Source: Octopus bimaculoides
Taxonomy: Eukaryota
Reading direction: 5' to 3'
NCBI RefSeq assembly: GCF_001194135.2
Contig: NC_068997.1
Coordinates: forward strand, 5,818,145 to 5,882,144
Length of the DNA: 64,000 nucleotides
The position numbers and the translations under genes were made by a program. This document shows, one piece after another, positions 3,121-61,865 of the stretch (position 1 is its first letter; each line of letters opens with the position of its first letter). A model generated the notes under the pieces. It saw only the letters and a program-made list of their open reading frames with translations, made no database searches and was not told the DNA's origin.

Positions 3121-3224
3121 TACAAATAATAATAATGATATCCTGTTTAATGCTAGTGATGCAAAAAAATACATTCAGTATTATTTACATTTGATGAATA
3201 TTTGTCCTCATCTTGTTTGTTGTT

Positions 3225-3270
3225 AACACAACGTTTCGGCTGATATACCCTCTGGCCTTCATCAGGTGTC
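3225..3270 (-). ncRNA. Minimal type I hammerhead ribozyme motif
   Basis: 5'-GACAC CUGAUGA A GGC-CAGAGGGUAUAUCA-GCC GAAAC GUU GUGUU-3': intact core, stem I GACAC/GUGUU, stem II GGC/GCC, palindromic stem III AACGUU. Confidence 0.75.
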
Positions 3271-3500
3271 TTGGGGGAAATTTTGAACCTGGGTTCTCAT
3301 TCCTAAGGTATTTTTTGATGTTATTATTATTATTCAGGTCACTGCTTGGAATCGAACTCAGAATGTTGGGGTTAGTAGCCAGCGCTCTTAACGCCAAGAT
3401 TCCAAGTTCAGTTCCAAGCAGTGACCTGAATAATAATAATAATAATAATAATATCAAAAAATACCTTAGGAATGAGAACCCAGGTTCGAAATTTCCCCAA

Positions 3501-3543
3501 GACACCTGATGAAGGCTTGAGGGTATATCAGCCGAAACGTGTT
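3501..3543 (+). ncRNA. Hammerhead motif, second arm (probably disabled)
   Basis: GACAC CUGAUGA A GGCUUGA-GGGUAUA-UCAGCC GAAAC GU GUU; 3-nt deletion relative to the other arm removes the cleavage-site and stem I register. Confidence 0.6.
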
Positions 3544-3809
3544 AACAAGAAACAAGATGAGGACAAATATTCATCTAATGTAAATAATGTACATAATTCT
3601 TCATCTCTTAAATATAGAACTGTACATTCAGTATATTCTGTAAAGTGGTTGGTGTTAGGAAGGACATCTAGTTAGAAGAATTATGCCAGAGTGGAATGTT
3701 AGAGTATAATGTAGATTCTGCAAACTGCAAAATAGAGTACTTGTTTAGAAAGCTAGCAGCAGAGAACTTCTCGTGGCATGGCACGGCTTTTCTTGTGACA
3801 GAGGCAGGT

Positions 3810-4035
3810 TTAACTCAAGCATTCACATTATTCTGTCAAAAGTAATGCTTATTTATTCACATGGTTTAAAATTAATCAGGCATTATTTTGTAGCTTTGAG
3901 ATTCAGATGAAGTAACTCTTAATTTTTAGAATGATATTGTAGTGTTGGTTTGAGAGGCTAGGTCTGGCCAGTTTGAATATAAAACAGGTAAAATATTTTG
4001 GCTGGATATGGCTGGTTTAAATGCTAAAGGGTTAA
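3810..4035. mobile_element. piggyBac-like MITE (TTAA-CCCTTTAGCATT termini)
   Basis: Right end aatgctaaagggttaa; degenerate left end ttaactcaagcatt; further copies at 22881-23089 and ~49830-50072. Confidence 0.7.
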
Positions 4036-4056
4036 ATATACTCAGTACATAATGGT

Positions 4057-9390: not shown

Positions 9391-9799
9391 GGTGCAGGAG
9401 TGGCTGTGTGGTAAGTAGCTTGCTTACCAACCACATGGTTCTGGGTTCATTCCCACTGCATGGCACCTTGGGTAAGTGTCTTCTACTATAGCCTCGGGCC
9501 GACCAAAGCTTTGTGAGTGGATTTGGTAGACGGAAACTGAAAGAGGCCCGTTGTATATATGTATATATATGTATGTGTGTGTATAAGTTTGTGTGTCTGT
9601 GTTTGTACCCCTAACATCGCTTGACAACCGATGCTGGTGTGTTTACGTCTCCGTAACTTAGCGGTTCGGCAAAATAAACTGATAGAATAAGTACTAGGCT
9701 TCCAAAGAATAAGTCCTGGGGTCGATTTGCTCGACTAAAGGTGGTGCTCCAGCATGGCCGCAGTCAAATGACTGAAACAAGTAAAAGAGTTAAAGAGTA
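9391..9799 (+). mobile_element. Full-length tRNA/CORE-like SINE family B with tail type 1 (B1)
   Basis: A-box-like TGGCTGTGTGGTAAG, B-box-like GGGTTCATTCCC, ttgggtaagtgtcttctactatagcc, (TA/TG)n hinge, tail ending aaatgactgaaacaagtaaaagag; many CpGs retained. Confidence 0.9.
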
Positions 9800-13675: not shown

Positions 13676-14030
13676 TCATCATCATCATCATCATCATCGT
13701 TTAACGTCCACTTTCCATGACAGCATGGGTTAGATGATTTGACTGACGACTGGTGAAATCGGATGGCAACACCAGGCTCAAGTCTGATTTGGCAGAGTTT
13801 CTACAGCTGGATGCCCTTCCTAAAGCCAACCACTCAGAGAGTGTAGTGGGTGCTTTTACGTGTCACCCGCACGAAGGCCAGTCAGGCGGTACTGGCAATG
13901 GCCACGCTCAAAATGGTGTATTTTATGTGCCACCTGCACAGGAGCTAGTCCAGGGGCACTGGCAACAATCTCGCTCGAAAATCCTACGAAGGCCAGTCAG
14001 GCGGTACTGGCAACGGCCATGTGTGTGTTA
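13676..14030 (-). mobile_element. 5'-truncated RTE LINE 3' end
   Basis: (CAT)n tail followed by tttaacgtccactttccatg; matches reverse complement of 54430-54620 plus 3'UTR modules. Confidence 0.85.
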
Positions 14031-14105
14031 AAGGGCATATGCTTATAAGGGGAAGGTGTATAGGTATGTTAAATGTATGTGTTTGTGTGCATATATATAT
14101 GTGTG

Positions 14106-14660
14106 TGTTGGGTTATCCCATAAATAATGTGGGTTTTTTTAATACTTCTTTTACTTTTTAAAATTAAGATAAAGTTCTTTTTTAATCTAAAATATAGTTT
14201 CCTTCATTTTCTACAATGCTCTTCCATCAATGTGGTAGACTTGCAAGGCCCCTCTTCCAAAATTCACTTGTCCATGACAAAAAATACTCCTCTGGTACTG
14301 TTCTGACCTTGTCTACAGAATTCATAGTTTTTCTGTCCAAATGATTTTGAAGACTACAGAATAAAGGATAATCAGATGGAGCAATGTATGGCGAACATGG
14401 TGGGTGGGGCATCATTTCCCATTCAAACTGCTCCAGCCTTTGGAATGTGATCCTCACTGTATGTGGCCGAACATTATCCTGATGGAAGAATATCTTTCAT
14501 CTTGAAACCAAAGATGGTCGTTTTTCTTCTAGTGTTGACTTATGCTGCTCAAGCAGTAGGACTCCTTTGTTATCATTTGGTTTGCGTTTTAAACATTCAA
14601 AGTGAACTAAACCTTTCATATCCCATCAAACAGTTAACAACACTTTATGTGGGTGAAGTC
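14106..14660 (-). mobile_element. Mariner transposase 3' relic with one TIR
   Basis: Minus-strand translation includes HPPCSPYIAPSDYPLF (mariner HPPYSPDLAPSDYHLF) and decayed LHPHKV..WDMKG; TIR ttgggttatcccataaataat at the left end. Confidence 0.85.
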
Positions 14661-19320: not shown

Positions 19321-19826
19321 ATGAAAGGTTTAATCCACTTTGAACTTTTAAATCAAAACCGAACGATAACAAAGGAGGTCTACTGCTTGAGCAGCTTAAA
19401 TCAGCACTAAAAGAAAAACGACCATCTTTGGTTTCAAGATGAAAGGTGTTCTTCCATCAGGATAATGCTCAGCCACATACAGCGAGGAAGACATTCCAAA
19501 GGCTGGAGCAGTCTGAATGGGAAACAATGCTCCCACCCACATATTTGCCAGACATTGCCCCATCTGATTATCATTTATTCCACAGTCTTCAAAATCATAT
19601 GGATGGAAAATATATGAAACCTGTAGACGAGATCAGAACAGTATTGGAGGAGTATTTTTCATCATGGACAAATGAATTTTGAAAGACGAGTCTTGCAAGT
19701 CTACCAGATAGATGGAAGAGTATTGTAGAAAAGGAAGAATATATTTTAAATTAAAAAAGAACTTTGTTTATCTTAATTTTAAAAAGTAAAAGAAGTATAA
19801 AAAACCAGTATTATTTATGGGAGAAC

Positions 19827-19832
<6 letters not shown>
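19321..19832 (+). mobile_element. Mariner transposase 3' relic with one TIR (same family as 14106-14660)
   Basis: FFHQDNAQPHTA..LPDIAPSDYHLF; TIR ttatttatgggagaacccaa followed by TA. Confidence 0.9.
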
Positions 19833-19864
<32 letters not shown>

Positions 19865-21640: not shown

Positions 21641-22364
21641 ACATAATACCACAAGCCAGCAATGCTTGGGCACTGATATTTGAATAATAATAGTCATTCA
21701 TCAGTAAAATCAATTCTAGATTATCAGAGACAGGTGATATATATGGCCTGGTTAATCAAAAGTACTTCTGACCTCACATATATTTACTTACACTGTAAAA
21801 TTATGCACCATGAATTTGCAGGATATGCATACATACTCACAAGCAGTTACATGCATATGCACATATATATATATATATATATACATAGTGTCTCTTTCTC
21901 ACTCATAGATGCATACATATATAAACATATTTCTGTCAACTACTAGAGGCGATGATATCCACTTATCTCTCCCACCTCAAACTTGCTGGCCAGTTTCATT
22001 CCTAAATTTGAAACCATTATTATCATAATGGTAGAATTGCTAGTATTGCATTATGTCTTTTAGATGTTTAGTTTGAACATGTGAAGGTCTGAGTTCAAAT
22101 CTGCTGGAATTCATTTTTGTGTTTCATCCATCTAGATCTCATGAAATAAGTATTCATTCTACATTTGAGATTTCTGGTAATTATTCTTATAATTATTTTA
22201 ATTGGACATTTGTCTTGAGTTTATGTGAACAAATTTATAACAGCCAAACAAAAAGATGTTTTTATGTTAATATTTCTTTTCTAATAACTATTACAAAGCT
22301 TGTTTATATTCCAAAGAGCGCATGCTGTTCTATCACATTTGAAGGAATAGCAAAGAATATCTAA

Positions 22365-23260
22365 CTCTTTTGTTACCATATTTCTGTTGAAATATACTGC
22401 TTGTGTTTCAGTTAATTTTGAAAACAATCATGAACTTTGTAAATTAAGTTTGCCTTCATTAATCTGGTGTTTGGAACATAGATTTTTTTTTCAAAGGTTT
22501 TAATTTAGATCAAATTAAAATGGGAAGTTCCTTACATAGAACCAAGGGTGGTCTCAGGTGGGTTGTTTATCAAGGATCAAAGAATGGAATTCTACTAAAC
22601 CCTTTTGGTACCAGCCAGCCTGATAATGCCCTTGATTTCATAATGCAAACTTCCTGTTTTAAAATGATCTAAATTAAAACCTTCCATCAAAATTTCATGT
22701 TAATTTATGTTCCAAATACCAGCTTAACTCCTTTGTTACCATATTTTTTTTTTTACTGAAATACACTGCCTTTGTTTTAGTTGATTTTGAAAATTTGTTA
22801 AAATGACTGTCATTGTTTAGCTAGGATTTAGAACATAAATTAACATGGACTTTTGGTGGAAGGTTTTCTTTTAGATCACTTTAACCCTTTAGCATTTAAA
22901 CTGGTCATATCCAGCACAAAATATTCTACCTGTTTTACATTCAAACTGACTAGATCCAGCCTTTCACACTCAGCCTAAAATATCATTCTAAAAATAAACA
23001 TTCGCAGCATTGATAATGCATGATTAATTCAAAACTGTGAATAAATAAGCATTACACTTGACAGAGTAAACTAAATGCTAAAGGGTCAAAACATGGAATT
23101 TGTATCATAGCTCCTAGGCCAGTCTCAGGTGGGTTGATATCAAAAGGGTTAATAAGGACAGTTATTTTACTAAATTCTTCATTATTTCAACATTAATTGA
23201 AACGAAGGCACTGTATTTCAATATATATTCTGATAAAGAGTAAATAATGACAGTTACACC
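22365..23260. mobile_element. Nested piggyBac-like MITE cluster
   Basis: Two copies of the ttaacyctttgttaccatattt..-terminated foldback family; a second MITE (22881-23089) is inserted at a TTAA inside one of them. Confidence 0.75.
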
Positions 23261-23395
23261 CTTCTCTATCCTTTAACTAACTCCTCCTCATGCTGATTCT
23301 TCCCGCCCTCACTCTTCCTTCTCATACCATCCCTCAAACTGCCATTTTTCTATATATGTAATATTGTCTCAATAGATTCCACTGAAATTAGATAA

Positions 23396-23536
23396 ATAAC
23401 CTTCGAACAGATAGTCAGCAGCGCCGCCTGGCTAGGGCTTGGCTGCTCTGCATTGACAAGGGGCAACACCCTGAAACTAGTCTGCAGATGCCAAACCAGC
23501 AGGGGGACACTGCTGACCTCCCCTGTTCGAAGGTTA
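23396..23536. repeat. 141-bp GC/CpG-rich foldback (inverted repeat)
   Basis: Perfect 15-bp ends ATAACCTTCGAACAG / CTGTTCGAAGGTTAT, then GTCAGCAG/CTGCTGAC, imperfect pairing continuing to a central loop. Confidence 0.85.
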
Positions 23537-23936
23537 TAAAGGACACAGGTTTCGTGTGTCACATAGCTAGCTAGAGGCGATGGCTTCTTGGAGCTAATTC
23601 ACGGCAGCTTTCGTCCTAATTTTGGGACTGCCATGTTGGCTTGGCGATAACTATTAATTGTCTCAATGTTTTTACCAGTTCTATTTTTGAAGAATTTGAA
23701 AGACAATCCGACAGTAATACATTCTTTCTGAAGTTGTGTAGTTTTATTTATTTGTTTATTTCAAATACTTGCCGGTCTAATACTGGGGTCAGTTTGATCG
23801 ACTAATCTCTCCCCTCTCTCCCTTATGCTTATGTTAGAAATTATTGGAATTGTGTGAAAGAAAGGAGGGGAAGGGTGGAATTTTGAGTGAGGGTATTGTG
23901 TGTGATGAGTGAGAGGAAAAGCATGAGTTAATATTG

Positions 23937-23946
23937 NNNNNNNNNN
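23937..23946. other. Assembly gap (10 N)
   Basis: N run next to a poly-G tract. Confidence 1.
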
Positions 23947-24639
23947 GGGGGGGGAGGGGAGACAGAGGAGAGAAACTGAATGAAAAGAAATGGAGAATCA
24001 GATGAAAATTACTTTGTTAAAAAATCTGTGTAAATAAGAGTATGTTGCAGTGTTGGCTAGCTAATGTCAGCCAAACACCACATTGCTTCATAATGCTGGT
24101 TTCAGATTACAATCCTGCATTGGCAAAGGCTTATCAATAAACCTTACCTTATCCATTTTAATCTGATTGCAAAAGCTCAGTTGTGGACTGAGAAGGTTCC
24201 TGGTTTGGCAAAGTAAAGAACTTTCAGACACTTTACTGAATGTCTGTGGAAATTTGAAGCGAGCAGGATGAGTAAGGTGTTAAGTTTTTTTTTGTTTTTT
24301 GTTTTTTTTTTGGCAACAAATACGAGAATAGTATAGATTGTAAGTATATTATATGAAACCAATCAGGAAATGTTGGAATATAGAGTTTGGCACACACAAA
24401 AAAAGAAAGATAAAGATTGAAATGTATCTTATACTTTAGGGTCTATTGGTTTAATTTTTTAATCTTATTTGGTTCTGTTTTCAACATTGCTTTGAGTTAT
24501 GATAGCTTTATCATTTATTGTTATTGTCATCAATGTTGTTTGTCATCATCATCATTGCTATCATTGTGATGATAGTTATTGGTGTTTTTCTAGACAAAGC
24601 CAGGTGTGGTAATATTTATCTCCACTTAAAAGTGGATGT

Positions 24640-24840
24640 TCTTTCAGAGCAAACTATACTGCAGTAGTTTGTTCTATCAGAACATTCACATTTAAATGGG
24701 GATAAATATAATCTCTTGGTATTAATACTGCCTCTGTTGGTAAAATATATTTTTCAAAAAGTCTGTGTGATGTGGGAGCTATTTGGTTGCTGTCTCTGGC
24801 AAATGTGGAGTAACTACATATAGGTCTCCCACATTGGTAT
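24640..24840. repeat. Unclassified interspersed repeat
   Basis: cagtagtttgttctatcagaacatt..ctcttggtattaatactgcctctgt shared with 45545-45720 and 45905-46030. Confidence 0.7.
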
Positions 24841-25849: not shown

Positions 25850-25885
<36 letters not shown>

Positions 25886-26247
25886 GCATGGCTGTGTGGT
25901 AAGAAGCTTGCTTTCAAACCACATAGTTCAGGGTGGGATCAGTACCACTGCATGGCACTTTGGGCAAGTGTCTTCTACTGTAGCTTCAGGCTGACCAAAG
26001 CCTTGTGATTAGATTTGGCAGACAGAAACTGAAAGAAGCCTGTCATATATGTGTGTGTGTGTTTGTCCCTCCACCATTGTTTGACAACCAATGTTGGTGT
26101 GTTTATGTCCCTGTAACTTAGCAGTTTGGCAAAAGAGACTAGTAGGCTTACAAAGCATAAGTGTTTGGATCAATTTCTTCAGCTAAAACCATTTAAGGCA
26201 GTGCTCCAGCATGCCCACAGTCAAATGACTGAAACAAGTAAAAGAAT
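25886..26247 (+). mobile_element. SINE B1
   Basis: Colinear with 9391-9799. Confidence 0.9.
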
Positions 26248-27117
26248 ATATAGCAGTTGTTTTGAAAGTACACTAATATACAAACATAGAAGCACCAGTA
26301 AAGAGAGCTTCTACATGGTTTCTTGCCCTGCTAGAAATACCAGCTAAATCTCCCTCACTTTATCTTGACAGTAAAAAAAAAAAAATGCACAGTGGATAAT
26401 GTTATTTTGGATGCACTGAAACTGAAAAAGTAAGAGGTTAGTTACAGCTTAGATTTAATGGATCAAAGCTGACCTATAGCTAAACACTTGTTGCAGTTAC
26501 TTAAAAAATACCCATGCTAGCACTGCAAAAAAACCAAAAAAAAAAAACCCACCTAGTACGCTCTACAGTGGCTGGCATTAAGAAAGGCATCCAACCATAG
26601 AAACCAAGCCAAAACAGACTATGGAACCTGGTGTGGTCTCCAGCCTTCCCAGTTCCTGTCAAGCTGTCCAACCAATGCCAGCATGAAAAACATGTTAAAT
26701 GTTAATGATATATGCCTACTTACCATACAGGGTTTTCACAAAAAGAAATCAACCAATTAACTTCCACATTACAAATACAACCTGTAAGTGGAGTAAGTGG
26801 AACAGTAAAAATATGCAAGATATTTCTCAAGTTTAAAATTAGACATTGTTTTTGTTAGCTACTTTCCAATGATGGAGATTTGCACCTTTGTTAGAAACCA
26901 GTTCCTTCTTCACAGGTAGAATTCAAATAATGGCATTAGGAAGGGCATCCAGCTGTAGAAACCATGCCTAAACAGACAACTGGAGCCTGATGCAGCCCTC
27001 TTATCGGACTGTCCAGTGCATGCCAGCATGGAAAACAGACATTAAATGATAATGATGATGATATTAGAAAATTCATGAAACAAAGGATTTCCATAGGTTC
27101 CCCTAGTAAATAATAAT

Positions 27118-29761: not shown

Positions 29762-30727
29762 GAGCTATAGTGGCAGGAATTTCCTCAAAGGGCTGCATAG
29801 TAGAACTGAATTCCGGTCTAGTGACTTTACTCTTGAAAACCAGCCCAAGGTGGATAATGATGAGATGGAAACAGTAGTGGAAGCGGATACATCTCAAATT
29901 ATGTGTGAGTTAGCAGCAAGGTTTGATGTTTCAATTCCAACTGTATTGGACCATCTGAAACAGATCGTCAAGGTAAAGAAACTGAACAAGTGGGTACCAC
30001 AGGAACTGAACGAGCATCAAATGACACATCATCTTGAAACTTGCTGTTTTTTGCTGCCATGGCATAAAAGCAAACCATTTTTACATTGTATTGTTATGTG
30101 TTATGAAAAATGGATTCTTTCCAGCAATAGCAAGCATTCTGCACAGTGGTTGGATAGAGATGAAGTACCAAAACACAATCCCAAAAAGCTAATGGTGTCT
30201 GTTTGGTGATCCAGTGGTGTCATCCAGTACAGTTTCATGAGACCTGATGAGTCCACTACAGTGGATGTATGCATTAAACAATTGGATGGAATGATGAGTG
30301 AACTTGCAATCAAATAACTGAGATTGGTCAATAGAGATAGGCCAATTCTCTTGCAAGACAATGCTTAACCACATGTTACACAAGAAATGCTACTCAAGTT
30401 ACAGGAACTGAACTTGGAAGTACTCGGCCATCCACCATATTCACCAGACCTTGCACCAACTGACTATCACGTTTTCTAGGTATTAGAACATTTTTTGTAA
30501 GGAAAAAACTTCAAATCTGAAGAAGATGCAAAAACAGCCTTTGTGATTTCATCACCTCTTGCTCTCTAGAATTCTTTGCTGCCAGCATAAATAAGCTACT
30601 GATAAAATGGGAAAATTGTGTTGATAATTTAGGTGCATACTTTGATTTACTGCATTGCTTTTTGTTGAGATAAAGTAAAATAAACTTTCAGTTTAAAATC
30701 AGACGTTTCATTCTTAATGATCTGATA
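29762..30727 (+). pseudogene. Decayed mariner (DD34D-type) transposase, 5' end missing, 3' TIR region present
   Basis: KWVPQEL, YEKWIL (DEKWI), LLQDNA, HPPYSPDLAPTDYH motifs with stops and frameshifts. Confidence 0.9.
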
Positions 30728-42856: not shown

Positions 42857-43589
42857 GGTGGCTGTTTGGTAAAAAGCTTGCTTCCCAACCATATGGTTCC
42901 AGGTTCAGTCCCACTGTGTGGCATCTTGGGCAAGTGTCTTCTACTATAGCCCTGGGCCCACCAAAACCTTGTGAGTGGATTTGGGAGATGGAAACTGAAA
43001 GAAGTTTGTTGTTGTGTGAGCACTGCCTTCTAGCACTTGTGCTGGTGGCACGTTAGAAAATCATTCGAGCGAGGTCATTGCCAGTACCGCTGGACTGGCT
43101 TCCGTGCAAGTAGGACGTAAAAAACACCTTTTTGAGCGTGGTCGTTGCCAGTACCGTGTGACTGGCCCTTGTGCCGGTGGCACGTAAAAGCATCCACTAC
43201 ACTCTTGGAATGGTTGGCGTTAGGAAGGGCATCCAGCTGTAGAAGCTCTGCCAGATCAGATTGGAGCCTGGTGCAGCCTTCTGGCTTGCCAGTCCTCAGT
43301 CAAATCGTCCAACCCATGCTAGCATGGAAAGCGGATGTTAAACAATGATGATGATGATGATGATTGTGTGTGTGTGTTTTTATATCTGTGTTTGTCCCCC
43401 CACCCGCATCACCACTTGACAGCTGGTGTTGTGTTTACATCCATGTAACTTAGCAGTTTGGCAAGAAACAGATAGAATAAGTACTAGGCTTAGAAATGAT
43501 AAGTCCTCGGGTCAAATTGTTCGACTAAAAGCCTTCAAGGCAGTGCTCCAGCATGGCTGCAGTCAAATGACTGAAACAAGTAAAAGAAT
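42857..43589 (+). mobile_element. SINE B1 interrupted at its microsatellite hinge by an RTE 3' end (~43021-43363)
   Basis: Head 42857-43010, RTE 3'UTR modules plus (ATG)n tail, then B1 tail to 43589. Confidence 0.85.
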
Positions 43590-44385: not shown

Positions 44386-46169
44386 AGCTATGTTGAGGTC
44401 AGTCTGTCCAGAATCTCAACTGTCCTGCTTACACAAGCATGAGCTGCATGTAGTTTAGATATCTTATCCACACAACCACTATATTGCCTCCCCTCAACAT
44501 ACACATTCACTACCTACAGAAGAAAACGGTTTGATTCATTGAAGAATTAACACTCTTCCTCTATCTCACTCACTCACTCACTCACTCACTCATTCACTCA
44601 CTCACTCACTCAAATGCATGCATGCATACACAGACAGACAGACAGACAGTAGTTATTTCCATAGAAAGACCATTCCAAGAACCATGAAAGGAAATACTTT
44701 GGTTGCTTTTGCTTCAAAGACTTTTTAGAATCATGCTTTTATTTTGTTTCTGATTGACTCCTGATTTTGTATTCATCATGAACCAACAGCTCTGGTGTGA
44801 TTAGAAATGTAGTAGTAGTAGTAGTAATAATAATAATAATAATCTGTGTATAAACAGTGAATACGTGATATGTTTCATGTTACTCTGGAATAAATATTTT
44901 AATAAAGAACATTATATAAAAAAAAGTCAGTCATTATTGTTGTTATTAAAAACACAGTGGAGTAACAAGAACTGGTACTGTTGGACCAAATACTTTATTG
45001 GTGGTGATATTGTTATTTAGTCTTGGTCAAATCAGGTATGATACATTTTGGCATAGTTGTTTTGGCATTACCTATTTGGTTTTGCTGGCTGACTCGACAT
45101 TAGATATTTTCTTTTCTTTTGTTCTCTCTCACTTTCTCTCCCCATTTCTGTGTGTGTGAGTATATAGTATATATATATATGTATGTGTGTGTGTGCGTGT
45201 GTGTTTGTGTGTATATATACACATACATGTTTCATGTATAAGAAAGAGGAGGAGTGTTTATGTCCATTGTATTTAATTCAATTAATAAATCACGTCTCAC
45301 TTTCTTCCTCTCTCTCACTCTATCTGTATGTGTATATTTTTGTGTGCCAGCATGTGTGTATGTTTGTCTCCAAGGCCAAAATGTACTGTTGCTAAAACAG
45401 GCTGAATGTCCAGTCAGCCATGATTGACATCCAAACAGCTGCACTCAATTATCTCCTTCCAGATTGTGCAGACATGTGACCAAAAGTCTTTCAGCTCTGA
45501 CCATCCTGCCCTTTTCTTATATGCAGAAAATCTAGGCCAAAAATCTACATCCACTAGCAATACAAACAAGAGTGCATTTTCACCTAGAGCCAATATGAAA
45601 GTTTCTCTCATGGCATCTACTACAGTATAGTTTGTTCTAACAGAACATCCTTGTTTAAGTGGTGATAAGTATTACCTCTTGGTATTAATACTGCCTCTGT
45701 CACTAATATATATGTTTTTAAACAACCCATCTGACTAATCGCAAAACCAGCGCCTTTTCTCTCACTGTTTTTCCATGTATCACTGACAGAGAAATGAGTC
45801 ACTTCTATCTCTAGCAGTTGAGTGTCATCACTGACAAAACCAAAGAAGGTCAAGATCATGTGATCTGGTGGTCTCGCCATTGGAGGTGGTAGGGATTTAT
45901 CTCCCCACAAGCAATATAGACAAAGTGCATTTTGCACCAAAAGCCAATATATGAGTTTCTCTCATGATATCTACTTCAGTATAGTTTGTTCTAACAGAAC
46001 ATCAATGTTTAAGTGCAGATAAATATTACATCCAGTATGTTCTTCTCTTTATGGTCTTTCAAGTTGACTTGAGTAAGATCAGCTCACTAATTTACTGTGT
46101 AAGGGACAGGAAGGTGTGCAGATCCACGATCACTGATGCATATTAGCATAGCATAGGAAGACAGAGATA

Positions 46170-49480: not shown

Positions 49481-50457
49481 AATAGAAGAAAGGAGACACT
49501 GTGTTTGTATGCAAGATATTGTAATAGTTCATGTGTGAATCTTTGCTAATCAATCTTATGACCTTCTTTTGAATGTGTGTGTGTTGTAGATTGACTGAAT
49601 TGTTACGGTTATTTGGCAATCGAGAGGTCCCATATCAATTCTGCTGCATGGCATCTTGCTGTCTTTTAGTGTAACTGCAGGGTAATTCAAACTCCTGGAA
49701 TGAAATTAGGCCAACGGATACTGTGTCAAAGCCAAGCAGATGGACTGGGCCTGAAATTCGAAAGGTATTACCTTCCTTGTCACATGCTGTGTGTGTTATG
49801 TTGATTCTACCTGAGGGTTACGTTTGATTAGCATTCAAACCAGCCATATCTGGCAGCGCCAATATTATACCTGTTTTATGTTCAAACTGGCCAGATCTGG
49901 TCTCTCACACCTATCCTATCATATCATTCTATAAGTAAACAACCACATCATCAAAATCCCAAAGCTATGAGAAAATTAATTCAAGATCCCAAAGCTACAA
50001 GATAACGATTAATTCAAAACAGTATGAATGAGTGTTACATTTGGCAAAGTAATCTGAATACTAAAGAGTTAAGTGTGCATGTGTCTGGAATTCTCAATTA
50101 CTTACATTAATTCAAGGCGTTTCCTACTTTGGTTGGTCAAACAACTGGATTCACTCTGATAACATCATTGGAGGTCTATTGAAATTCAGTGTGTGTGTGT
50201 GTGTGTGTGTGGCAGTGGTGCCGTCATGTGAGTAGTACTCTGACGAAGAGCTTATTCAGTAATGTAACAGAGAGTAGGTTTCCACCCTGGATAATGCTTT
50301 TAGTGTGACACTTTTGTGTCTGTTGTGTAAGACTATAGACTCGGTGCCCGGAAGGATGGGATGGGCAAACTTGAGAACTGCCATGGGTGGCACACACTCA
50401 GGATATGTTACTGGTCTTATTTTAAATGACATATCTACACAAGTGTGCCCCCCCTCC

Positions 50458-53595: not shown

Positions 53596-54620
53596 TTGTG
53601 TTACCTAGGCGACCAAGTCTGTAGTAGTGGTGGTGGCTGCTCTGAGAGTGTAGTGACTAGAGTAAGAATAGCCCGGGCAAAGTTCAGAGAGCTCCTACCT
53701 TTGCTGGCAATTAAGTTCAGGGAGCTCCTACCTCTGCTGGCTCAGGTAGACTGTATGATTCATGTGTGTGAACTGCCATGCTACATGGCTGTGAAACATG
53801 GGTCATAAATGCTGAGGACATGCATAGGCTTGAAAGAAATGAAGCTAGTATGATCCACTGGATGTGTTATATCAGTGTGCACACACAAGAGAGTGTAAGT
53901 GCCCTGAGAGAAAAGTTGGGCACAAGAAGCATCAAATGTGGTGTACAAGTAAGGCATCTGCGCTGGTATAGTCATGTTATGTATGAATGAAGACAGCTGT
54001 CTGAGGAAGTGCCACTCCCTAACTGTAGAAGGAACCTGTGGAAGAGGTAGACCCAGGAAGACATGGTATGAGGTGGTGAAACATGACCTTCGAACACTGG
54101 GCCTCACAAAGGCAATGACAGGAGTCCGGGACCTTTGGAGATATGCTGTGATTGAGAAGACCCAGCAACTAAAATGAGATGGCAGCCACACATATCCAGG
54201 CCTGATGCGTCGGGCAATATGATATGGTTGAGAAGACATGTTGACTCAAGTAAAACCAATATCGTAGCTGTGGCCATTGCCCCCTGACTAGCTCCCATGC
54301 CGGTGGCATGTAAAAGGCACCATCTGAATGTGGCTGATGCCAGGTCCGCCTGACCGGCTCTTGTGCCAGTGGCACATAAAAAGCACCATCCGAATGTGAT
54401 TGATGCCAGGCCCACCTGACTGGCTCCTGTGCTGGTGACACGTAAAAAGCACCCACTGCACTCTCAGAGTAGCTGGTGTTAGGAACGGCATCCAGCTGTA
54501 GAAACATTGTCAGATCAGATTGGTGCCTGGTGCAGCTGCTGGCTCTCCAGTCCTCAGTCAAACCACCCAACCCATGCCAGCATGGAAAATGGATATTAAA
54601 CAAGGATGATGATGATGATG
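53596..54620 (+). mobile_element. 5'-truncated, frameshifted RTE-clade LINE (RT C-terminus, 3'UTR, (ATG)n tail)
   Basis: LCYLGDQ, MLHGCETW, LRWYSHV, GRGRPRKTW motifs; 33-bp internal duplication near 53680-53745; three 66-bp 3'UTR modules; gatgatgatgatg tail. Confidence 0.92.
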
Positions 54621-54830
54621 AAGTTAACCACTGAATGGATAAAATTGGGTTAAATATTTTAATTAAACTGTGAAGCTTAGTATTGCATTTATTTGTCATT
54701 GTGTATGTTAAATCCTTCTTATTGATATTTTTCAGCAGAATTATACTGACTATGCATTTCAATTAATGAAGGTTTAAAAACAATCAAGACTTTAGGAGTG
54801 GGTTCAGTCTCTAACAGCTAACATCTTTAT

Positions 54831-55207
54831 TAATACTTTTGTTACCATATTTCTGTTAAAACACACTGCCCTTATTTCAATTACTCTTTGAATGTAATGA
54901 AGTATTTTGCAAAATAGCTTTGTCCATTATTCAGCTGGTATTTGGAACGGAAATTAGCAGGGAAGTTTTAACTTAGATCACATTAACCCTTTTCATACCA
55001 ACCCACCTGTGACTGCCCTTGGTTTTATGATATGAATTTTATGCTTTAAGGTAATCTCAAATAAAACTCTCCATCAAAATTCAATTTTAATTTATGTTCC
55101 AAACCAGCTTAATAATGACATTATTTTACTAAATTCTTCATTATTTCCAGAATTAATTGAAACAAAAGCAGTGTATTTCAACAGAAATATGGTAACAAAA
55201 GGGTTAA
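54831..55207. mobile_element. piggyBac-like foldback MITE
   Basis: Termini ttttgttaccatatttctgttaaaacacac / gtgtatttcaacagaaatatggtaacaaaagggttaa. Confidence 0.85.
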
Positions 55208-56566
55208 GATGGGAAGCTTGTATAATAGAAAAGAGTTAGTCTCAGGTAGTGGGTAGGTGGGTGGGGTATATTAAAATGGTAAAATTAATGTTCGGCACAT
55301 AACATAATGGGGAAAAAAAATGGTTCTCGCATAAAATTATTGTAGAGCATTTAAATTCAAAGAATCACTTTAGAATGAGCAGTTTTGTGTAATAGAGGCA
55401 AGGGCGGTCTCAGGCGTGTTGGCTTCAAAGAGTTAAATAACATTGACACAGGCTATTTTATGGTTCATAACTTGGCTTTTCGCCATTAAAAATTTGGAAT
55501 ATATTTCCAACAGATTCCAATTTGTTTTTCAGACTCTCTTTACTTTCTCTGTTTTATCAAGACAGTTTCTTTTTTTTTTTTTTTGCATGTTGAAAATTTT
55601 AAATAGAATTTATTGAGGAATTTGTTTTTTTTAAAAAAGTTTTTGACATTTTTTTTCTATAAGTTGTTGACAGAATTAAAAATCTGACAAACAGCTTGTT
55701 TAATAATTAGTTTAAGCTTATGTTCAAGGAAAAAGAATTAACAAAAAAGAAAAAAACAACAAAAGACAAAAAAAAAGAAAATTATAAATAGTTTACATAT
55801 TATTTGCATAATTCCAAAATGTATTCATAATTTTCTGAAGTAAAATAAAAAAAAATAAATTTGAAAAGAAAATCAGTTTGAAATTTGTTTATAACATTTA
55901 AGTGGTCTTAACTTACTTAATGGCTGTTGTTGTTTAACCCCAGGCCAATCCTGACCAAGTAGATCTAAGGATCAAAGTTGTTCCAGTGATGATCATTCTA
56001 CCTCTTGTTCTTAGACATAGTGTCTTAGATTACATTATCCAGTGTATCGTTCCATTTATTTTAAACAGTTCATTGTGATTTGAGGGAGATTTGGCTACTA
56101 TTTCTAGCTAAGGAGGTGTCATGTAGAGGATCTGTTTTCAGCTCTGTACAAATTTGCTTTATTTGATTAGCACAGTTGGTTCAGACACGATAGTACATAT
56201 AAGAGTTACTGGGGAAGTTACTTGTGACATACAATTTCCTATCCAGGGGCAGTTGAAATTTACTTGATGTTTATTTTGAAAACATTAAGCCAATGCTGAT
56301 CAATGACTTTTACCAATCCTTTGACATTTCTGCAGGTATTTTCATATTGGCATCAGCTGCATATTTGCTCAAAGAAAATATGGTGAAAAATCAGAAATTG
56401 TTTTGATGGATCAGAGAAAAAACACAAGGGTGGATGTTAAAACACTACTGAGAATGCTAATGATGGTGGTGGTGAGGCTGATAAAAATGGTGATTATGAT
56501 ACTGATGAGAGGATGATGGAAATTATGATGATTTTTAGCAACATGGTGAGGATGATAATAGTTTCC

Positions 56567-59885: not shown

Positions 59886-59895
59886 NNNNNNNNNN
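59886..59895. other. Assembly gap (10 N)
   Basis: N run beside (TA)n. Confidence 1.
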
Positions 59896-60896: not shown

Positions 60897-61295
60897 GCGT
60901 AAGAGTGGCTGTGTGGTAAGTAGCTTGCTTACCAACCACATGTTTCCGGGTTCATTCCCACTGCGTGGCAACTTGGGCAAGTGTCTTCTACTGTAGCCTT
61001 GGGCCGACCAAAGCCCTTGTGAGTGGATTTGGTAGACGGAAACTGAAAGAAGCCTGTCGTATATATGTGTATATATATATGTGTGTGTATGTTTGTGTGT
61101 CTGTGTTTGTCCCCCCCAACATCGCTTGACAACCGATGGTGGTATGTTTACGTCCCTGTAACTTTGCAGTTCGGCAAAAGAGACCAATAGAATAAGTACT
61201 AGGCTTACAAAGAATAAGTCCTGGGGTCGATTTGCTCGACTAAAGGTGGTGCTCCAGCATGGCCACAGTCAAATAACTGAAACAAGCAAAAGAGT
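60897..61295 (+). mobile_element. Full-length SINE B1
   Basis: Close match to 9391-9799; CpGs retained. Confidence 0.9.
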
Positions 61296-61373: not shown

Positions 61374-61865
61374 NNNNNNNNNNNNNNNNNNNNNNNNNNN
61401 NNNNNNNNNNNNNNNNNNNNNNNNNNNNNNNNNNNNNNNNNNNNNNNNNNNNNNNNNNNNNNNNNNNNNNNNNNNNNNNNNNNNNNNNNNNNNNNNNNNN
61501 NNNNNNNNNNNNNNNNNNNNNNNNNNNNNNNNNNNNNNNNNNNNNNNNNNNNNNNNNNNNNNNNNNNNNNNNNNNNNNNNNNNNNNNNNNNNNNNNNNNN
61601 NNNNNNNNNNNNNNNNNNNNNNNNNNNNNNNNNNNNNNNNNNNNNNNNNNNNNNNNNNNNNNNNNNNNNNNNNNNNNNNNNNNNNNNNNNNNNNNNNNNN
61701 NNNNNNNNNNNNNNNNNNNNNNNNNNNNNNNNNNNNNNNNNNNNNNNNNNNNNNNNNNNNNNNNNNNNNNNNNNNNNNNNNNNNNNNNNNNNNNNNNNNN
61801 NNNNNNNNNNNNNNNNNNNNNNNNNNNNNNNNNNNNNNNNNNNNNNNNNNNNNNNNNNNNNNNNN
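61374..61865. other. Assembly gap (492 N) between (TA)n tracts
   Basis: N run. Confidence 1.

Follow-up and report, generated by a model that had tools for sequence, protein, structure and literature searches.

A CpG-rich, hairpin-bearing island in the Octopus bimaculoides genome as a candidate young mobile-element insertion

How does a short island that is rich in GC and CpG, folds in part into a strong hairpin and is bracketed by a perfect direct repeat come to stand in DNA that is otherwise AT-rich and depleted of CpG? The question is raised by a locus in a 64,000-nucleotide stretch of the Octopus bimaculoides genome (the whole of this stretch is referred to here as the window), which is packed with repeat families and resembles invertebrate, cephalopod-type repeat-rich DNA. 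A first-pass annotation of the same letters had read the island as a young insertion with the bracketing repeat as its target-site duplication, and had seen in it a rod-like structured element akin to retrozymes, viroids or viruses or, alternatively, a conserved locus of noncoding RNA or regulatory function. The analysis presented here retains insertion as the best-supported reading, on the strength of a perfect bracketing repeat (P ~0.01) and of a GC and CpG content like that of young SINE copies, and finds no support for kinship with replicating RNAs or viruses. We put at about even the chance that the 283-bp unit between the repeats (23374-23656) is a young, low-copy, non-autonomous and non-coding mobile-element insertion with an 11-bp target-site duplication.

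Extent and composition of the island

The perfect 11-bp repeat ATTGTCTCAAT occupies positions 23363-23373 and 23657-23667, its right-hand copy lying one base further right than first described (23656-23666), and the two copies, a putative target-site duplication, stand 294 bp apart from start to start. Between them lies the putative inserted element (23374-23656), whose GC content of 0.498 compares with 0.357 for the window and whose nine CpG dinucleotides give an observed-to-expected ratio (o/e) of 0.51 against 0.20, a count at the 99th percentile of 283-nt windows; the claim that the island is richer in GC and CpG than its surroundings is borne out by these figures. Nine of the 20 CpGs found between 22000 and 25500 sit inside 23404-23645. 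What the island comes down to is one strong hairpin, preceded by 22 bp of AT-rich leader and followed by a tail that is rich in CpG but weakly structured: the leader (23374-23395) has a GC content of 0.27 and no CpG, and would form the 3' end if an RNA were made from the minus strand; the hairpin, referred to as the rod, spans 23396-23537; and the non-palindromic remainder of 119 bp (23538-23656) has a GC content of 0.47 and five CpGs. CpG o/e reaches 0.36 in the rod and 0.77 in the tail versus 0.23 and 0.39 in the two flanks, and the enrichment of both parts suggests that they arrived together.

The unit shows none of the usual end features of a mobile element. An A-rich or simple-repeat tail is absent at both ends, no inverted repeat joins the outer ends of 23374-23656, and no tandem repeat or array was found at the unit. 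A second copy within the 64-kb window was found neither by blastn at word size 7 nor by nhmmer at E<=10, in agreement with the first-pass annotation, which had seen no other matching repeat in the window.

The repeats of the window itself provide a calibration for the age of the island. Two SINE-like families, SINE-A and SINE-B, account for the other three CpG-richest loci (~9.4, 13.7 and 43.0 kb), and their members in the window lie at 9398-9790, 60903-61295, 25879-26252, 13678-13979, 43064-43364 and 54335-54621; SINE-A has, by eye, a tRNA-like head. The youngest pair of SINE-A copies, 91.6% identical, has a CpG o/e of 0.54-0.66, and an older copy at ~73-75% identity has no CpG left (o/e 0), while in SINE-B the younger pair, at 84% identity, has an o/e of 0.58-0.65 and the older copy one of 0.26. 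Since CpG o/e falls with SINE divergence, CpG richness can serve as a within-window clock of insertion age, and by this clock the island, with an o/e of 0.51 and a GC content of 0.50 like those of the young SINE copies, reads as a young insert. Its richness in GC and CpG would then be the look of any young insert here before methylation-driven CpG decay. This also counsels caution: in this CpG-depleted genome, a short GC- and CpG-rich hairpin island would be the normal signature of recent insertion and not that of a special RNA.

The same composition could in principle mark a small unmethylated CpG island that serves an unannotated transcript as its promoter or first exon, the presence of rod and repeat then being incidental. 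The enrichment in GC and CpG agrees with such a promoter, as does a minus-strand ATG followed 32 nt later by a possible splice-donor GT, but the young SINE copies in the window give the same compositional signature, the reading frames of the unit are short and match nothing, and neither an exon-like ORF nor a Pfam domain occurs within ~2 kb on either side. No recognisable gene was found around the unit, and we hold a CpG-island promoter at this locus to be very improbable.

How much weight, then, can the bracketing repeat itself bear? Non-simple direct repeats of at least 11 nt at spacings of 150-600 bp number 77 in the 64-kb window, and a repeat of at least 11 nt is found around random 200-400-bp intervals of the window with P ~0.009. 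This value is suggestive and not decisive, since the reader who singled out the island was free to choose among several, which weakens the significance of the repeat. A near-repeat pair, ACTGCCATtTT at 23338-23348 and ACTGCCATgTT at 23627-23637 (P ~0.06 on its own), lies on nearly the same diagonal, its spacing of 289 bp being 5 bp below the 294 bp of the ATTGTCTCAAT pair; the duplicated region may thus be longer and degenerate, which would be a poor fit to a simple target duplication. Clear target duplications were found at none of the window's SINE copies, so that these offer no yardstick for the 11-bp repeat, and the immediate flanks of the 283-bp unit are unique within the window, in which no paralogous empty site was found.

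The palindromic rod and the remainder of the unit

Over 142 nt (23396-23537), one more than the 141 first reported, the rod forms an imperfect palindrome, closed at its base by perfect terminal inverted repeats of 15 bp (ATAACCTTCGAACAG / CTGTTCGAAGGTTAT). Beyond this base the arms are ~75% complementary, with several indels and an arm divergence of ~20-25%, and the hairpin is best paired at the base and opens into large distal loops. Folding of both strands against shuffled sequences, which the first-pass annotation had proposed as a check, gave minimum free energies (MFE) of -73.0 kcal/mol (z -7.7) for the plus strand and -80.9 kcal/mol (z -8.7) for the minus strand as RNA, with 0 of 200 shuffles as good in either case, and a folding z of -6.7 as DNA; the earlier description of a rod at this place is sound in all but its length. 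Strong hairpins are nonetheless common in this DNA. In a 142-nt sliding MFE scan of the plus strand over the whole window the rod ranks second among hairpin loci, others being found near 38.6, 24.6, 13.8, 37.0 and 63.6 kb, and the strongest is a ~390-bp palindrome at ~3190-3580 with a 142-nt plus-strand MFE down to -78.8. To the eye, this palindrome seems to be built from two tRNA-like repeat units, inverted about an (AAT)n tract; mirror-image ORFs lie on both strands.

The remainder of the unit behaves differently from the rod. Its small features were for the most part described faithfully: the GACACA/TGTGTC hairpin is present at 23542-23560, one base to the right of the place first given, the palindrome TAGCTAGCTA spans 23564-23573 and the core of the last hairpin 23600-23635. 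As a whole, however, 23538-23656 folds with a z of -1.7 on the plus strand (13 of 200 shuffles as good) and of -2.0 on the minus strand (7 of 200), and is not clearly structured beyond chance. The picture of consecutive hairpins along the island, although its listed elements all exist, thus holds statistically only for the rod.

This restriction of significant structure to the rod, together with the nature of the rod's ends, invites the proposal that the rod alone was mobile. Its perfect 12-bp termini resemble terminal inverted repeats, the left one ACCTTCGAACAG at 23399-23410 on the plus strand with TA before it at 23397-23398, the right one CTGTTCGAAGGT at 23523-23534 on the same strand with TA after it at 23535-23536. 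A 136-bp palindromic Tc1/mariner-type MITE or foldback element (23399-23534) could have inserted at TA, the ATTGTCTCAAT repeat being a chance occurrence, which the 77 non-simple repeats of such length in 64 kb show not to be rare, and the 119-bp CpG-rich right part being unrelated debris of a young repeat. The perfect termini (15 bp with the TA included) and the TA on both sides fit this proposal, as does the finding that in Octopus vulgaris no other TIR superfamily has as many recently active families and insertions as Tc1-mariner (PMC13282606). In human, palindromic mariner-derived MITEs of the MADE1 type reportedly fold into hairpins and gave rise to hairpin microRNA genes (PMC1784062). The rod is like MADE1-type elements in being short and non-coding, in consisting almost entirely of two inverted arms, in having its termini beside TA and in forming a hairpin on either strand, and differs from them in being GC-rich, in being part of a larger unit that also has a non-palindromic tail of 119 bp and is flanked by an 11-bp repeat, and in having no other copy in the window.

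Other points tell against movement of the rod alone. TA is self-complementary, and any palindrome in AT-rich DNA can therefore look TA-flanked; the rod termini are unrelated to the ends of the mariner copies in the window; and insertion of the rod alone leaves to coincidence both the CpG-rich tail and the repeat that frames the whole island. We regard a mobile rod in an unrelated setting as possible, if rather unlikely, and favour movement of the whole 283-bp unit as one piece, with the ATTGTCTCAAT pair as its presumed target-site duplication. The perfect repeat stands against divergent rod arms, which indicates that the imperfection of the arms predates the insertion and is a property of the source sequence.

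One further feature of the rod concerns its possible life as RNA. The minus-strand fold contains five G:U pairs and the plus-strand fold none, an asymmetry with P ~0.06 that hints weakly at selection acting on the RNA; were the rod to function as RNA, the minus strand, alone in gaining G:U pairs, may be the relevant one.

Searches for related RNAs, ribozymes and proteins

Rfam 15 at gathering thresholds returned no family anywhere in the window, and in permissive searches with segments of 1001, 141 and 176 nt the best match, to mir-6505, scored 16.9 bits where the gathering score is 96; the Rfam scan, likewise proposed by the first-pass annotation, thus yielded nothing near threshold. Matches to snRNA, 7SK, RNase MRP, vault, Y, SRP, 5S and tRNA families were absent from Rfam at E<=10, and ARAGORN found no tRNA at the unit. 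Resemblances to promoter boxes, an Sm-type site, internal polymerase III boxes and 5S RNA found no support in Rfam or ARAGORN and were dropped.

These searches bear on the proposal that the island holds the gene for a structured small RNA of ~290 nt specific to the lineage, or a retrocopy of such a gene. Such a gene could be a polymerase III type-3-like unit that relies on the TATA-like octamer TATATATG (23351-23358, plus strand, left of the repeat) and terminates at a run of five T (23669-23673, plus strand, right of the repeat), or it could be a hairpin-RNA locus whose rod yields small RNAs or serves as an RNA-editing substrate. The octamer precedes the AT-rich beginning of the unit by ~25-30 bp and the five T follow 2 bp past the right repeat, the rod is very stable, the G:U asymmetry between its strands points weakly the same way, and CpG retention would also be compatible with an unmethylated, active locus. 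Known type-3 genes (7SK, RNase MRP, vault and Y RNA) offer a likeness in the ~290 nt between TATA-like motif and five T and in the stable stem, but the unit matches none of those Rfam families and carries an internal run of four T (23620-23623) on the plus strand, while on the minus strand, favoured by G:U pairing, no T run follows downstream. Should the repeat be a target duplication, moreover, both the octamer and the T run would belong to the adjoining, ordinary AT-rich target DNA. Again, the part outside the rod has no significant structure, and the best Rfam score lies far below its gathering score. An animal microRNA precursor would be a hairpin of ~60-80 nt with an even stem of ~22 nt that gives rise to small-RNA reads; the rod measures 142 nt, is best paired at the base and has large distal loops. 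Strings from the unit do not occur in the supplementary files of an octopus microRNA study, although these files may not include precursor sequences.

We consider a small-RNA gene or retrocopy unlikely, and give slightly less credence still to the more specific statement that an undescribed structured small RNA of the cephalopod lineage, ~290 nt long, has in the island its gene or a copy retroposed very recently, with the rod as its functional core, be it as a source of hairpin or double-stranded RNA or as a protein-binding scaffold. The unit would gain in significance, as a structured RNA new to cephalopods, only if it turned out to be single-copy, conserved and transcribed.

More exotic is the suggestion that a small replicating RNA, circular or rod-like (a retrozyme or a viroid-like or delta-like agent), or else the terminal hairpin of a virus, was copied into DNA here, the 11-bp repeat being the overlap left by a copy slightly longer than the unit. 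The unit shares with retrozymes and viroid-like circular RNAs its small size, its structure, the lack of an ORF and its repeated ends, that is, its terminal redundancy, and on the minus strand the hairpin and following purine-rich stretch of 23600-23635 looked somewhat like part of a hammerhead. That hammerhead-like impression had no Rfam support and was dropped: no hammerhead, twister, hatchet, pistol, delta-like or hairpin ribozyme was found at E<=10, even when the search was narrowed from 1001 nt to segments of 141 and 176 nt. Unlike such RNAs, the unit is a rod over only 142 of its 283 nt, the remainder folding like shuffled sequence, and it has neither tandem multimers nor long terminal repeats. 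Four exact-pattern scans of a viral contig collection gave 0 matches, and the ten ORFs of the surrounding region (~21.2-25.4 kb) include none of viral type and none that passes the curated cut-off of a Pfam family. The retrozyme-, viroid- or virus-like character first suggested for the island is therefore not upheld, and we judge an origin from a replicating RNA or a virus to be exceedingly improbable.

Protein and nucleotide comparisons, made against collections that contain no cephalopod genomic DNA, were uninformative as to kinship. A frame of 82 aa across the unit had no homologue in a protein search, the unit's reading frames carry no Pfam domain, and three ORFs of the window had no record in an exact look-up. 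Prokaryotic genomes (exact-pattern scan) and plasmids and phages (blastn) gave no match, the single match in a metagenome scan was a chance one in high-GC bacterial coding sequence, and of the literature searched with strings from the unit only unrelated primers matched. LTR-style and Helitron-style ends were looked for by eye and rejected as not fitting the unit. A pyrimidine-rich tract lies to the left of the island (23270-23345) and a purine-rich one to its right (23810-23990); the alignment score of a larger inverted repeat formed by such flanks around the island exceeded the shuffle mean by ~1.6 sd without reaching that of the best shuffle, and this candidate was likewise set aside as unconvincing.

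Proposed mode of insertion and repeat context

In light of the composition of the unit, its bracketing repeat and the searches described above, we propose that a 283-bp element inserted fairly recently into AT-rich, repeat-filled DNA and in doing so would have duplicated 11 bp of its target, ATTGTCTCAAT. The rod may represent a palindromic MITE or foldback module, with perfect 12-bp termini beside TA and a degenerate interior, that was already present in the source copy and travelled with it. Retroposition by a LINE enzyme appears the likeliest mode because of the length of the repeat: flanking duplications of retroposons measure ~5-20 bp, a range that includes the perfect 11-bp ATTGTCTCAAT. 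A Mutator-type event, the class with target duplications of 9-11 bp, would fit less well, because the terminal inverted repeats that it requires are absent at the unit ends. At this locus the element is probably inert; were the region transcribed, the rod would be expected to give an interrupted double-stranded RNA of ~55 bp.

Retroposition is not without its own difficulties. ARAGORN, Rfam and comparison within the window revealed neither a 3' tail nor a tRNA-, 5S-, 7SL- or snRNA-derived head with a polymerase III promoter, and the lack of a tail, of a recognisable head, of a second copy in 64 kb and of an empty site weakens the case for an insertion. On the other side stands the base rate. 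The curated annotation of Octopus vulgaris assigns 66% of the genome to repeats and lists 893 families of "unclassified SINE", whose recent insertions total only 4510, alongside 65 families of MITEs; families with recent insertions number 73 in Tc1-mariner and 21 in Mutator (PMC13282606). Young low-copy families are, by these counts, very numerous, which favours reading the unit as an insertion. With the low-copy "unclassified SINE" elements and other young non-autonomous retroposons of octopus (PMC13282606) the unit has in common a length of a few hundred base pairs, the lack of coding capacity and a GC and CpG content raised above background, and its direct repeat is of a length typical of LINE-mediated insertions; it differs from octopus retroposons in having neither a tRNA-, 5S- or snRNA-like head nor an A-rich or simple-repeat tail, in being unlike the other repeats of the window and in carrying a 142-nt palindrome. 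If a young insertion it is, the island would be one more copy of a young, low-copy mobile element among thousands in the genome.

The DNA around the unit has a rich repeat content of its own, and the 283-bp unit is placed at the edge of a repeat nest. A further repeat family with direct and inverted copies occupies 22360-23230, immediately to the left of the unit, and recurs at 54836-55212; within the left-hand cluster, 70-nt arms at 22659-22728 and 22815-22884 are 86% complementary. A MITE-like repeat of ~200 bp, whose 19-bp inverted ends start with TTTAACCCTTTAGC, has three copies in the window (22880-23090, 3818-4036 and 49828-49967), one of them 280 bp to the left of the unit; its ends are presumably piggyBac-like, with TTAA as target. 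Runs of N at 23937-23946, 59886-59895 and 61374-61865 are assembly gaps, and since the first of them begins only 270 bp to the right of the unit, the right-hand context is incomplete. Beyond this gap, 1 kb to the right of the unit, lies an AT-rich hairpin of 98 nt (24612-24709) with 45-nt arms that are 82% complementary and stand 8 nt apart, and the segment 24657-24758, which overlaps the right arm, is matched at 45618-45722 by a paralogue of 82% identity. Mariner-type fragments occur at 14091-14619 and 19321-19847, in inverted orientation and 85.6% identical to each other, and also at 29850-30209, where a 119-aa ORF has its best match, at 57% identity, to HTH_48 / Transposase_1 proteins.
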